A stretch of 64,000 bases of DNA from Cycas panzhihuaensis (GCA_023213395.1 CM041465.1:223207741-223271740); one strand, 5' to 3'. Numbered from the stretch's first letter, positions 12,517-17,827 are shown. The notes: generated by a model from the letters alone, not told the origin. A program made the numbers and translations.

Positions 12517-12880
12517 TGTTAAGATTTTAACATGGAGAACATTCAACCATAAGAACAATATCAACAAACAGAGATCAGCACAATATAATCAGAATGTATT
12601 AATATACCGAAAGCACCAAAGACTCAATGTGAGCCTTGATGATGTGATTTGTTTACATACTACCTCAACCACCTTTATATACCAAAGAGGTGGGAGACTA
12701 AACATCCCAAGTGGTGCATGTGGGACAAATACCTTTGTCCTGACTAATATCATTATACCACAAACTTGACCAATAAACTTATATCCTTTTACATAGTATT
12801 ATAATGACCTTTTGACCCTAAGACTTAGGACTATCACTTATTATCCTAGGACCCACATACATTAAACATTATTTCTAACA
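12517..12880 (-). repeat. 3' LTR (364 bp)
   Basis: Direct repeat of 17459-17827; preceded by the PPT on the minus strand. Confidence 0.95.
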
Positions 12881-12975
12881 CCTCCCCTTAATGTTTAGTG
12901 TTTGAACTAAGGACAATTTGACATGAATAGACATTAAAGACTACATGACAAGACTGATATGACTATCAACAGACT

Positions 12976-14343
12976 CTAATGTACTTTGTCTTCTTTGAAT
13001 CTCCACCGCCTTGATCTTGGAAAGATCTTGAACACCATGTCTTGGGCATGGTCTTGGTCTTCAACCTTGTAGTGTCTTTTCTGAAGCTGACGATCTTCAA
13101 GCTTTGCTTCTTTCAGCTTCATACATAGTTGAGAATCCTTTGTCATGCTAAACAAGTAGTGAATGATGGCTAATTCCACATGATCCTGCATGTACTCATC
13201 AAAGACATCTATCACCTGTTTACTTCCATTTTCTTCAGTGCGTGAGTGACCAATGTAGACGTTAGCAATATCATCATTATCCAAATGCAGCAATGAGTTG
13301 TCAACTGTTAAGACACCATTATCCTCCCCTGAATCAATGGGTTTATTGAGACAAGTTCCTGCAAGTTGTGTGATATACCCTGTTTTCTTTGTGTCACTCA
13401 AGGAGTTCCATGAACTAAGTATAATGAGAATTCCCATGATGCTCACATGCATATACTTCCTGATTGTGGATATACACACATGGAACATAATTTCAATCTG
13501 ATTGACTTTCACAGTCAGGTAACCTATCCAAAAGGTGATATGAATTCGATAAGCCAGATCCTGATGACATGACATCCTCCTTGTGTTCCTTTGAAAACAA
13601 CTTTCTAATGTCGCTTTAGGATATACTGCTATAATTTTGATCTTTTCAAAAATGGAGAATGTAGCTGAGTTGAGGGAGAACACGGATATTTTCCAATATA
13701 TGCAAATCACTGTATGACCTGTCACCATTTGAATTCTTCCTATCAACTTGTCAACACAAAATAGGATAATATTATCCATACCTTTTGTTAGACAACTCAT
13801 GTCTGCATGAACTATTACTGGCAAAGATTGATACCTAAGATCTTCAGCCCCCAGAGCTGGTTTCTTGATGAGACTCGAGGTATTTGATGGAATCATGGCT
13901 TTGTCTCGCTGCTTTTCCCTTTTTTCTTTTCTCTTCAACTTCTTCCTTTGGTTTTTTGCTCTTTTGATTTTCTGCTGTACTTCTTCAGGTCATTTTTCAT
14001 GCACTTCTGTCAATAGTTTCCAAGCGTCCTCAGCTGAGTCAGTATTCTGCAGAACCTGAATAATGAAGTGATAGGAAGTAGGGAGGTTATCCATATCAAT
14101 AGCTGCAAGTATCACATCAATAACAATCCTGTTTTTCCTTTTAAATATTTCCTCCCCTTCTTCATGAGCCATTTCAGTCCCTATGACAGTTTTCCAAAGT
14201 TTCTTCACTACAAATAGACTTTCCATCCTAATTTTCCAAAATCGAAAATTAGTTCCAATGTATTTGGGCAGAGGAAAGGTGAGATCTGATAACCAATATT
14301 CATTTCTCTCAGGCACAAAAGTGATAATGTCACTTATCTCCAT
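12976..14343 (-). CDS. Copia gag-like frame (456 codons) split by a single TGA at 13992-13990
   Basis: N-terminus PKYIGTNFRFWKIRMESLFVVKKLWKTVIG and AEDAWKLL resemble Copia gag. The two track ORFs are in the same frame, separated by 17 sense codons. Confidence 0.7.
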
Positions 14344-14789
14344 GATGTCAAGAAGTCAATCACAATTTGTAATTCTTAGGACAAAGTTTTAGCAACTTAC
14401 AATAGAGGATATCGTAACAACAATCTGGTCTTAGTGTCAATAGTTTGGGAACAATCAACAGCTGTAGTCCAAGTACCTCCTCAATTAACAGCAACTTGTT
14501 CATTCATTTGTATCACGACACATGTGTGCCCTAAATTCTTCAAGGTAAATGGCTTCAGTTAACTGGACAAGCATACCTTGCAGGATTCAGTCATTACCTT
14601 GAGAAGGATGTTGCTTCAGTTGGGTGTCACAGTCTTCCTTCAAAAAAACTTCTGACAAACAGTGCTCAGATTTGGTCCCACGTCTCTCTTTTCATATACA
14701 GTTTGGTATTATCAGTCATAATCTGCCTTCAGTCCAGAATTTGGGTACAAATTTCACCCACTATGTTCTTCTACAGACTTGCACTTTCT

Positions 14790-14860
14790 ATGGAGGACTG
14801 ACCTCAACTCCTTTGCAATTCTTTAAGCACTTTGGGTGGAAGGTTCTCATTTTCAGCCAT
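14790..14860 (-). pseudogene. UBC22: Captured fragment: N-terminus of ubiquitin-conjugating enzyme E2 S
   Basis: MAENENLPPKVLKE, then AKELR after a frameshift; recalled plant UBC22 reads MASNENLPPNVIKQLAKELK. Confidence 0.7.
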
Positions 14861-15877
14861 TTAGCTCACAGCCTGAAACCTTCAAAGGTTCATGCACTAA
14901 TTTTCTGGTTCATCGAAAAACCAGCACTTGTACCAGGTCACTGACCCATTCTTGAATATCTTTGTCATGCAAATGATGTCTCCATAAGAGTTTGAGACCA
15001 GTCGCTGGAATCCTGGCAACTTCTACAGCACAAATCAGCTTTCTAAGGAAAACAGACAGATCATAACCACGAACAGCCAGCCTGGAAAGCCTCCAGTATT
15101 CCTTCTTCACCAACTGCTTGGTCAAAAGAGCCGCTATCAGGAAACACGGATGAGATGTACTAGATATCCATCCAGCCTCTGCACAGATCGGATTGAAATA
15201 GCGGAATATTTGGGATCGCCCACAACAAAATTGCTCTCAAAGCCAGCCTCACCAAACAAGCAGGCACCGAACAACACAATTCCATCAAAAAGCAAAGCAG
15301 CTGAGTTACTAAATTGATATTGTCTCAGGTGGGTCTAGAAGTTGGTGCCTACGTTTCTGGCAAAACAATATTACTGTTTTTTCTTGCCAAATGGCCAACA
15401 TTACGATACTTGCTACCACGATCACTGTCTCTTTAACGTATGCTAAAAAACATACAGCGGGTTTGATACAGTAGCAAGCCCCCTAAGCCACGCCCCATTA
15501 GACGACTAATTCCATTCCCGCATGGCCCCGAACGAAACATATACCGGCAGGAGAAACTACCTGATTGGGGAACAGAGCACTTGATTGCATGGATCAACAG
15601 ACGAAGAATTCTGATTTCATTTTATTACTCCGAAAGGCATTTTGACGTGTCTTTCATTGACACTTCGTGAGCATGGGGTGGAATAAATGGGCCTTCATAC
15701 CGCCGAACCTCACGAAACCTAAATTTTTGGTGTATAATGCGACTCCTCCTGAAGCATGGCTCAAACAGGTAGGGACGTTTCCTTTCGATATCAATTTCTC
15801 CGTTCCAGCTGAAATTCGCCAAACGTTAACAAGATTGCCAACCATGGGCAACAATAAACCCTAGGAGAACTGTAGAC

Positions 15878-16052
15878 GAGATTGTGACCCTGCAGTGCAG
15901 GCTCTGAAGTACTCTGGGGATACCCACTACTCTACACTGTTGACATCAGTGCATCGTGCATATTTGCTGAAATGTCTCGACAGGAAGCTCTGTTTAGCAA
16001 GGATTCTGAACTGCAACAACTTTTGCACATATTCAGGCTTCGTGGAACTCCT
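15878..16052 (+). pseudogene. CDKB: Captured fragment: B-type cyclin-dependent kinase (subdomains VIII-X)
   Basis: EIVTL..R / EVL.GDTHYST / VDISASCIFAEMSRQEALFSKDSELQQLLHIFRLRGTP, with frameshifts; DSELQQLLHIFRLLGTP is typical of plant CDKB. Confidence 0.88.
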
Positions 16053-16077
16053 TGGAACTCCTTGGATCAACCACTGC

Positions 16078-16164: not shown

Positions 16165-16211
16165 GCAGAACCGAACCTGGAGGGAGATGGGTACCAAAGA
16201 GACTTCCTTAT

Positions 16212-16295
16212 GCTTCCAGTGGTGTTGATGTCTATACTGCTCTTGCTGGAGCCACTGGTGCATTATATGGTCCCCTACATGGAGGAGCAAATGAG
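16212..16295 (+). pseudogene. CSY: Captured fragment: peroxisomal/glyoxysomal citrate synthase
   Basis: [28 protein letters not shown] contains the citrate-synthase GPLHGGANE signature. Confidence 0.92.
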
Positions 16296-16309
16296 GTTGT
16301 CTTCTTCAT

Positions 16310-16552
16310 GGAATGCCTCTCAGACGCCGGGGATCCGTGGAGACGTATATATACGCGTTATTTGGTGAGAATATGCGAGATGGACCCGTTCTGGCAGACT
16401 GGGGGTTTATGAATTCGAATATGACGAGGAAGTACCCTTTGGATCTGTCAGGAGGAAGAGCGGAACGACGCTCTGTCTTTCGTATTCTCTGCACTTCGTA
16501 CCTTCTGTTTACTTTGTTCCCCGTGCTGGTCTGGATGACTGTTGGACTGTAA
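16310..16552 (+). pseudogene. Captured fragment: GH17 beta-1,3-glucanase C-terminus, possibly with a GPI-signal-like hydrophobic tail
   Basis: [26 protein letters not shown]...[18 protein letters not shown] matches the GH17 end pattern (GTP..ETYIFALFNEN..GP..WGLF...KY.LDLSG); followed by a hydrophobic tail and a stop. Confidence 0.82.
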
Positions 16553-16571
16553 ATTACAAATCTGGGCAGTT

Positions 16572-16643
16572 GATAAAATTCCTGAGTTCATTGAGGGGGT
16601 GAGAACCAGAAAGAGGCTTATATTTGTTGGAGACTCGCTCAGC
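16572..16643 (+). pseudogene. TBL: Captured fragment: TRICHOME BIREFRINGENCE-LIKE O-acetyltransferase (GDS motif)
   Basis: [20 protein letters not shown] versus the TBL consensus FLE.LRGKRLMFVGDSL. Confidence 0.65.
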
Positions 16644-17458
16644 TGTCACTGTGTAACTGGGCGCCGACTTACTTTGTAGCTGGGCCACTTTCCTGGCTCT
16701 TTTCTGCAAGATCTCCTGGGCGTGGTGCTTTTAATTACAGGCTTAGTTACAGACTTCAACGCCAAGTGAAATGATCAATGGACGTTGATGAAGTATGGGG
16801 CAGAGTGAAGGCACAGACTATAGGCAGGCTTCACAGAGCCTTGGATTGATAGGCACAACAGATATAACTAGAGTATACTGAAGGAGGTAAATACGAATTG
16901 AGATAACCTTTTTAAGTCTTCAAGGCTCCTGCATAAACAACTTGTGGCTTTTGGAGTAAGCTCCACGTCTTTGCTAGGCGCAGAAGCGGAAGTACAGATC
17001 TCGGTGAGATTAAGGTAGCATAGACTTCCTCTTATTATTACGGTACTGACAAGCACAAATAGTTTGGTAGAAGGTTATCAAACCTAAGATGTTAGGGTTT
17101 ATCTCAACAATTCTTATCCTCTGCACAACTCTTATCACAATTTCTCCACAGGCAAGGCAGCATAGATTTCACTCATGACAGTATTTCAAGGACAGATTTT
17201 CATGATCTTGAATCCTCAATATTCTTCAAAACAGATCTTCAGAGAGGATACTTTGCAAACAAGGTTCAAAGACCAATAATTTTTCACATAGCACAAGGGT
17301 GATGTTACCTGGCATGCTCCTTGAAACTTCTCTTCAATCTAGCATCCATTTGATGGAGCCACCTCCTTGCTTGAACGCTTTATCTTCTACTGGACTTCTC
17401 CTCTCTCGATCTTCGTCTCACAATAGCTCTTACAGCAAGATGGCCTGCTCTGATACCA

Positions 17459-17827
17459 TGTTAAGATTTTAACATGGAGAACATTCAACCATAAGAACAA
17501 TATCAACAAACAGAGATCAGCACAATATAATCAGAATGTATTAATATACCGAAAGCACCAAAGACTCAATGTGAGCCTTGATGATGTGATTTGTTTACAT
17601 ACTACCTCAACCACCTTTATATACCAAAGAGGTGGGAGACTAAACATCCCAAGTGGTGCATGTGGGACAAATACCTTTGTCCTGACCTGACTAATAGCAT
17701 TATACCACAAACTTGACCAATAAACTTATATCCTTTTACATAGTATTATAATGACCTTTTGACCCTAAGACTTAGGACTATCACTTATTATCCTAGGACC
17801 CACATACATTAAACATTATTTCTAACA
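17459..17827 (-). repeat. 5' LTR (369 bp)
   Basis: Direct repeat of 12517-12880; followed immediately by the PBS TGGTATCAGAGCA on the minus strand. Confidence 0.95.

Follow-up and report, generated by a model that had tools for sequence, protein, structure and literature searches.

Long terminal repeat (LTR) retrotransposons occasionally carry pieces of host genes, and a single locus in Cycas panzhihuaensis raises the question of how several unrelated pieces came to lie in one such element, and in what order they arrived. The locus lies in a 64,000-nucleotide stretch of the genome (GCA_023213395.1 CM041465.1:223207741-223271740; hereafter the window, in which all positions are counted). An element at 12517-17827, on the minus strand, carries fragments of a cyclin-dependent kinase (CDK), a citrate synthase and a GH17 beta-glucanase in the leader upstream of its gag-like open reading frame (ORF). 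The explanation that we favour, at an overall probability of about 0.72 with the route of capture included, is that the element is non-autonomous, an LTR retrotransposon of the Ty1/Copia type that resembles Bs1 of maize and stands between TR-GAG and LARD elements, and that host fragments were drawn into its ancestral copy by template switching during reverse transcription.

The boundaries of the element were established first. On the minus strand, it opens with a 5' LTR of 369 bp (17459-17827) and closes with a 3' LTR of 364 bp (12517-12880), which are direct repeats with TG...CA ends. The perfect 5-bp target site duplication (TSD), AGAGT on the minus strand and read from the sequence, flanks the element upstream at 17828-17832 and downstream at 12512-12516. 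The primer binding site (PBS) is a 12-mer, TGGTATCAGAGC, located next to the 5' LTR at 17447-17458 and of the initiator tRNA-Met type usual for Ty1/Copia elements. The polypurine tract (PPT), AAGGGGAGG, was likewise read directly next to the 3' LTR at 12881-12889. Between these signals lie the 5' leader of 3103 bp (14344-17446), a putative gag ORF (13990-14343) and a second ORF (12976-13989), referred to below as the orphan ORF. The total length is 5311 bp, of which ~2.5-3 kb would be left if the cargo region were removed from the leader.

A single substitution and an indel of 5 bp (CCTGA) separate the two LTRs. We calculated the age of the insertion from the one substitution in 364 bp, using plant substitution rates of 1.3e-8 or 7e-9 per site per year. 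Insertion was recent, roughly 0.1-0.2 million years (Myr) ago, with the large uncertainty that a single substitution entails. The original prediction of a young and structurally complete LTR element, with LTRs, perfect TSD, PBS and PPT, was reproduced to the exact base. The same features bear on the idea that the leader is an assembly artefact, in which reads of different origin were wrongly joined between two genuine LTRs. The matching TSD, the proper placement of PBS and PPT and the near-identical LTRs are those of one coherent insertion, and the junctions between the fragments are seamless, with graded decay. Hence, we consider such an artefact extremely improbable. Within the 64-kb window there was no second copy of the element, no part of it recurred, and no related gag was present elsewhere. 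A search of metagenomes with the 22-mer spanning the LTR end and the PBS returned 17 loci, none of which was alike beyond the PBS region; these were unrelated Copia ends.

The leader differs in composition from its surroundings. Its GC content was 44.0%, and 48.2% in its core (15628-16700), compared with 34% in the LTRs, 35-37% in the flanks and 36.8% in the whole window. The leader of ~3.1 kb is therefore indeed richer in GC, as had been predicted. We scanned all stop-free segments of the interior in six frames against Pfam (102 segments from the leader and 36 from the remainder). In the leader, three host families reached significance in Pfam or against PDB proteins: CDK, citrate synthase and GH17. 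All three are encoded on the plus strand, i.e., antisense to the element. These unrelated host pieces are crowded into 15878-16619, where linkers are absent or very short, and coding sequence is all that is recognisable within the cargo fragments.

The first of the significant fragments (15878-16058, plus strand, antisense to the element) corresponds to the C-lobe of a CDK (EIVTL...SCIFAEM...LLHIFRLRGTP). A phmmer search of the PDB matched it to CDK3 (E 3.6e-7) and to residues 173-225 of CDK2 (E 9e-7). The reading is spread across three frames, with at least three frameshifts in ~190 bp. One of these frame-breaking lesions is a perfect tandem duplication of 2.4 copies of the 10-bp unit TGGAACTCCT (16043-16066, plus strand), which doubles the GTP codons.

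The second fragment is divided in two. Citrate synthase piece a (16209-16298/16325, plus strand, antisense to the element) matched Pfam Citrate_synt (E 1e-9) and residues 266-302 of peroxisomal citrate synthase 3 (CSY3) in the PDB (E 1.1e-11). Piece b (16557-16619, plus strand) had its best PDB match to residues 302-322 of citrate synthase 3, with ~14/21 identical residues and an E value of 0.084 when taken alone. We assign it to citrate synthase because it matches the same protein at the residues directly after those of piece a, of which it is the collinear continuation. The C-terminal fragment of a GH17 beta-glucanase (16316-16552, plus strand; aligned over 16316-16444) lies between the two pieces. 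It matched Pfam Glyco_hydro_17 (E 5.9e-7) and residues 264-305 of the 306 residues of barley 1,3-1,4-beta-glucanase in the PDB (E 9.4e-7). Beyond the alignment, the reading continues without a stop along a hydrophobic tail until a TAA is reached at 16550-16552, so that the piece may extend to the donor's own stop codon; on this reading the tail is counted as part of the fragment. Judged from these alignments, the citrate synthase fragment appears to be one contiguous stretch of ~57 codons, split by the GH17 piece of ~230 bp. An intron between the two citrate synthase pieces was considered and rejected, because a significant GH17 match occupies this gap of ~230 bp, which moreover does not end in an AG acceptor.

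As a control, we applied the identical six-frame Pfam scan to a neighbouring young Copia element in the window (45660-50743). It yielded only RVT_2, rve, gag_pre-integrs, SH3_retrovirus, DUF4219 and Retrotran_gag_2. Since the control contained retroelement domains only, the host-gene matches are specific to the leader of the cargo-bearing element. With three families significant, the predicted mosaic of unrelated host coding fragments in the 5' leader of a young, non-autonomous LTR element is upheld.

The count of host families was smaller than originally claimed. Six had been named, of which CDK, citrate synthase and GH17 are those described above. The fragment ascribed to TBL was misassigned: 16557-16619 belongs to citrate synthase 3 instead, and what remains is a 10-residue motif within a possible TBL/PC-esterase stretch (16611-16670, plus strand) that matched profile positions 8-26 of Pfam PC-Esterase at a non-significant E value of 0.24. 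The short piece GASRIVATANTEKLAELKAVVDP (16036-16160, minus strand), read as an alkenal/one oxidoreductase, is ambiguous and could equally be BBE-like; it had no PDB match at E<=1 and its best Pfam match was BBE at E 0.21, so that the claimed identity is unsupported. The sixth candidate (14590-14868, minus strand, sense to the element) starts at an ATG (MAENENLPPKVLKEL...) and possibly represents the N-terminal ~95 codons of a UBC22/UBE2S-like protein. Its likeness to the family consists of collinear patches followed by eye in a three-frame reading over at least five frameshifts, and stops also interrupt it. Its stop-free pieces, which are too short to score, gave no E2 match in any search. 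The cargo would thus comprise three firm families and possibly UBC22, with the remaining two unsupported.

Further searches of the leader added little. At E<=0.1, Pfam found no Pkinase, UQ_con or ADH domain in it, and Rfam found no RNA family. Comparison of the further long open frames of the leader with the PDB gave noise only (CylK repeats, a PsaC-like match at E 0.32 and a lysozyme-like match at E 0.024), and a search of the ESM Atlas with 15661-15861 gave only weak GT8-type leads (score 0.86). The PsaC-like stretch (C.R..S.C.TD.....YLGS.TT; 15144-15236, plus strand) lies in an open frame of 109 amino acids, and its E value of 0.32 refers to 24 PsaC chains. Either a decayed piece of plastid origin or a chance resemblance could account for it.

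The state of decay of the cargo indicates when it was acquired. At least three frameshifts and the 10-bp duplication in the CDK piece of ~190 bp stand against only two differences between the LTRs, and no mark of a later insertion was seen: neither an internal LTR nor a flanking TSD is visible around the cargo, and no transposon ends were found there. Hence, the cargo predates the insertion, in agreement with the original prediction, and there are strong grounds to suppose that the mosaic was already present in the RNA that was reverse-transcribed into the present copy. The cargo would then have been aged and disrupted before the present copy arose, and would therefore have been carried along in one or more cycles of transcription, reverse transcription and integration.

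A gene-capturing DNA transposon (Pack-MULE, Pack-CACTA or Helitron), or a part of one, nested in the leader of the ancestral or the present copy would also deliver several gene fragments at once. Such multiple capture is common: of the Helitrons in maize, 68% hold at least two fragments, and for Pack-MULEs the figure is 50% (bioRxiv 10.1101/777037), and four consecutive pieces of the cargo do share one orientation. The expected ends are lacking, however. No terminal inverted repeats (TIRs) of at least 14 nt bracket the GC-rich block; in 14300-17460 we found only a 34-nt imperfect palindrome and a 16-nt pair (81%), neither of which flanks the cargo. Helitrons, which insert at A|T, end in a 3' hairpin followed by CTRR; such an end, sought as a perfect stem of at least 6 bp (GC >=50%) followed by CTRR-T, was absent from both strands of the leader, although a decayed end would escape this search. 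A TSD flanking the nested unit, for which 9-10 bp or 3 bp would be expected with a Pack-MULE or Pack-CACTA, is not visible either. Moreover, a transposon that arrived after integration must be younger than 0.1-0.2 Myr and yet be heavily decayed. We therefore regard a nested DNA transposon as very unlikely.

The coding capacity outside the leader is small. The 117 codons of the putative gag ORF (14343-13993, then a TGA) matched DUF4219 (E 2.2e-4) and, over profile positions 1-75 out of 172, Retrotran_gag_2 (E 0.012); neither match reached the curated Pfam cut-offs. These matches weakly suggest a truncated N-terminal stub of a Copia gag. The same frame continues beyond the single in-frame TGA into the orphan ORF, which comprises 337 stop-free codons with a start rich in K and R and a first ATG at 13896. 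A gag-like frame near the 3' end had been predicted; the DUF4219 and Retrotran_gag_2 matches agree with it, but the frame is reduced to a sub-threshold N-terminal stub and is followed by an unrelated conserved ORF. In the six-frame Pfam scan of the whole interior, no reverse transcriptase (RT), integrase, protease or RNase H domain was found, which confirms the predicted lack of RT and integrase. The element retains all that is required in cis, namely LTR ends, a tRNA-Met PBS and a PPT. With only a gag stub and an orphan ORF, and without pol, it would be non-autonomous and reliant on proteins supplied in trans.

Pfam recognised no domain in the orphan ORF. When 1.84 billion representatives were searched exhaustively with HMMER, four relatives were returned (E 1.4e-30 to 3.8e-6) of 170-289 amino acids, with ~26-38% identity over the aligned stretches, which jointly span the full length of the ORF. 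All four originate from single Logan contigs and are likewise devoid of Pfam domains. The ORF and its relatives have in common the start KNQ+KKLKRK and a C-terminal AQD..F...RW+FK motif. The AlphaFold model, built on an alignment of five sequences, was unusable (pLDDT 35.6). From these relatives, the orphan ORF appears to be conserved, lineage-specific and unrelated to gag. A protein homologue search restricted by a length window found no homologue of similar length for the gag ORF, and no match for the orphan ORF or the GH17 segment. As the length window leaves out full-length proteins, including full-length donors, these three blanks carry little meaning.

How did the fragments enter the element? 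Template switching by reverse transcriptase has been documented for yeast Ty, Drosophila and vertebrate LTR elements and has been proposed for Bs1 (PMC5131818, PMC13317346). In the explanation that we favour, an autonomous Copia element would have supplied the proteins for copying and integration in trans, and the fragments would have joined an ancestral master copy when its reverse transcriptase switched onto host RNA or cDNA in the virus-like particle. The antisense orientation would then be explained if the enzyme had switched while making the plus strand, or had switched to host cDNA. The position of the GH17 piece inside an otherwise contiguous citrate synthase fragment means that there were either two acquisitions in succession or a double switch, there and back. 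This arrangement fits more than one acquisition step, in which the GH17 piece would have entered a citrate synthase piece that was already in place. The cargo itself is most likely a passenger without a coding role.

Several points weigh against this explanation. The three significant fragments are antisense, an orientation not expected from the simplest switch onto mRNA during minus-strand synthesis. That GH17 splits citrate synthase exactly, with no obvious loss of sequence, would follow from an insertion at the DNA level too. The cargo lies upstream of gag, whereas in Bs1 and in the animal cases pol is replaced. The gag assignment is weak (E 2e-4 and 0.012, both under the Pfam cut-offs). 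Finally, we infer rather than observe the mobilisation of the family in trans, an origin from RNA with loss of introns, and microhomology at the junctions.

Some of these points would be accommodated if the mosaic had arisen as DNA, in a master copy in the chromosome whose leader suffered double-strand breaks that were mended, as a synthesis-dependent or end-joining patchwork, with filler copied from ectopic templates, and which was then retrotransposed. This alternative differs from the favoured explanation only in the route of capture. The antisense orientation needs no extra assumption in this case, and a filler origin agrees with pieces that are short (60-240 bp), abutting and in both orientations, and with a GH17 piece that splits citrate synthase exactly between adjacent residues without evident loss. 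For the clean interruption and the two orientations, DNA-level filler performs equally well as template switching. However, every recognisable piece is coding, and no intron or intergenic spacer is visible among them. Moreover, the possible UBC22 piece, with its ~95 codons from the ATG, would suggest spliced RNA as template, and published LTR captures bear the signature of template switching (PMC5131818). On balance we consider the DNA-level route rather unlikely, although it deserves to be taken seriously.

Mobilisation in trans, as favoured here, calls for an autonomous partner, and the window contains other Copia elements. The element used as a control (45660-50743, plus strand) is very young. 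Its 220-bp LTRs are 100% identical, its TSD is TATTA, its PPT is AAGAGGGGG, and the same tRNA-Met PBS 12-mer follows its LTR at 45880. Its gag-pol region consists of short stop-free pieces only (RVT_2, rve, gag_pre-integrs and SH3_retrovirus), with no ORF of at least 130 amino acids, and it was probably also mobilised in trans. The LTR starts at 17804-17827 (minus strand; the cargo-bearing element), 45660-45683 (plus strand) and 60531-60554 (minus strand) have ~20 of their first 24 bases in common (TGTTAGAAATAATGTTTAATGTA and variants), and the PPTs are similar; otherwise, the three LTRs are dissimilar. The common LTR starts and similar PPTs suggest one Copia lineage, which would be a possible source of integrase and RT for the cargo-bearing element.

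Other repeats in the window are older. Two LTRs of ~1.07 kb (27376-28439 and 33171-34244), 89-91% identical and spaced by 5.8 kb, enclose ORFs at 29404-32983 (minus strand) and presumably belong to an element of the autonomous type. Furthermore, two pairs of diverged direct repeats, with 70-85% identity, were found at 44949-45349 and 62120-62521 (17.2 kb apart) and at 35675-36408 and 54125-54858 (18.5 kb apart). These may be the LTRs of large old elements in which the younger Copia elements at 45660 and at 55337-60554 are nested.

What the locus adds is an LTR element that was still mobilised ~0.1-0.2 Myr ago while its leader of ~3 kb, upstream of gag, included old remnants of host genes. From the GH17 piece inside citrate synthase, the order of capture can be read within the element itself. 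Cross-talk through small interfering RNA (siRNA) between captured fragments and their donor genes has been proposed (bioRxiv 10.1101/777037; PMC13477047). If sibling copies with different cargo exist, they would offer a tractable plant system for studying how LTR elements acquire host sequence, why it comes in both orientations, and whether antisense transcripts driven by the LTR engage in siRNA cross-talk with the donor genes, along the lines of the "epigenetic conflict" proposal for maize. A further idea, which we put forward as doubtful, is that the element belongs to an active lineage of Copia derivatives with a gag stub and an orphan ORF, in which the leader between PBS and gag is the preferred site for stepwise and mainly antisense cargo that varies between copies ("Pack-LTR"). 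Template switches just after plus-strand transfer, for example, would supply the leader fragments in such a lineage, and transcription from the LTR would produce RNA antisense to many host genes. On present evidence, the locus is one more example that leaves the existing picture unchanged.

The maize element Bs1 is reportedly the subject of primary studies by Jin and Bennetzen (1994) and Elrouby and Bureau (2001, 2010). As summarised in PMC13317346, Bs1 is a gag-only Copia-like element with three host-gene transductions, including a beta-1,3-glucanase. The Cycas element resembles it (PMC13317346, PMC5131818) in being a Copia-like LTR element that lacks pol, retains a putative gag, carries unlinked host-gene fragments, a glucanase among them, and would be propagated non-autonomously. 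It has the at least two unlinked fragments between LTRs that typify Bs1 (CDK, citrate synthase and GH17, at E 1e-6 to 1e-11). The fragments of Bs1 are three in number and in sense orientation; they make up a hybrid ORF, joined to gag on its downstream side, which undergoes transcription and translation. In contrast, no hybrid ORF with gag was found here, as the significant fragments are frameshifted and on the opposite strand to gag. They lie upstream of it and form no meaningful ORF. The candidate fragments are also more numerous than in Bs1 (three firm, up to six).

Elements of the TR-GAG class are defined by LTR, PBS, PPT, a 5-bp TSD, a length of at most 4 kb, a single GAG ORF and at least two genomic copies; captured genes go unmentioned in the paper that describes them (Chaparro et al. 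2015, PMC4350172). The Cycas element shares with them the LTRs, PBS, PPT and 5-bp TSD, and the lack of similarity to protease, integrase, RT or RNase H. It differs in its length of 5311 bp, beyond the 4-kb limit (PMC4350172), and in having a 117-codon gag stub (profile positions 1-75 of 172) together with an unrelated conserved ORF. The TR-GAG label originally given to it therefore suits the terminal structures and the want of any other retroelement domain, but not its length, and a gag reduced to a stub with an orphan ORF behind it makes the label doubtful.

Host-gene capture by LTR elements has also been described in other settings. LTR-mediated retroposition produces multi-gene chimeras through multiple switches guided by microsimilarity, and so-called pseudo-LTR retrotransposons, which are able to undergo a new round of retroposition (Tan et al. 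2016, PMC5131818). Those cases are similar in that partial mRNA pieces, sometimes from at least two genes, lie between LTRs. They differ in taking the place of some internal ORF sequence and in their youth (<1% diverged), whereas the cargo described here is old and lies in the leader. Among maize Sireviruses, 3% carry exon fragments; 15% of these carry at least two, and there is no orientation bias (bioRxiv 10.1101/777037). In seed plants, 13.7% of the capturing transposable elements hold at least two fragments (PMC13477047). The present element resembles the Copia elements of these surveys, which contain exon fragments of ~90-1900 nt and of which a minority hold at least two (bioRxiv 10.1101/777037; PMC13477047). 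The surveys deal mostly with full-length elements of the autonomous type, and a leader mosaic in a gag-only element is not singled out in them. The assumption in the original prediction that LTR elements usually capture one or a few sense pieces was too strong, given the three transductions of Bs1, the 15% of capturing Sireviruses with at least two fragments, and their lack of orientation bias.

Pack-MULEs, Pack-CACTAs and Helitrons are likewise mobile mosaics of several unrelated host-gene fragments. These are, however, DNA transposons with TIRs or Helitron termini that capture genomic DNA, and the Cycas element has none of those ends. Capture of multiple genes by LTR elements, without orientation bias, is thus already published, and the element adds a clean example rather than a new phenomenon. 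Its distinctive points are modest: cargo upstream of gag, firm pieces that are all antisense, one piece nested in another, and a conserved orphan ORF.

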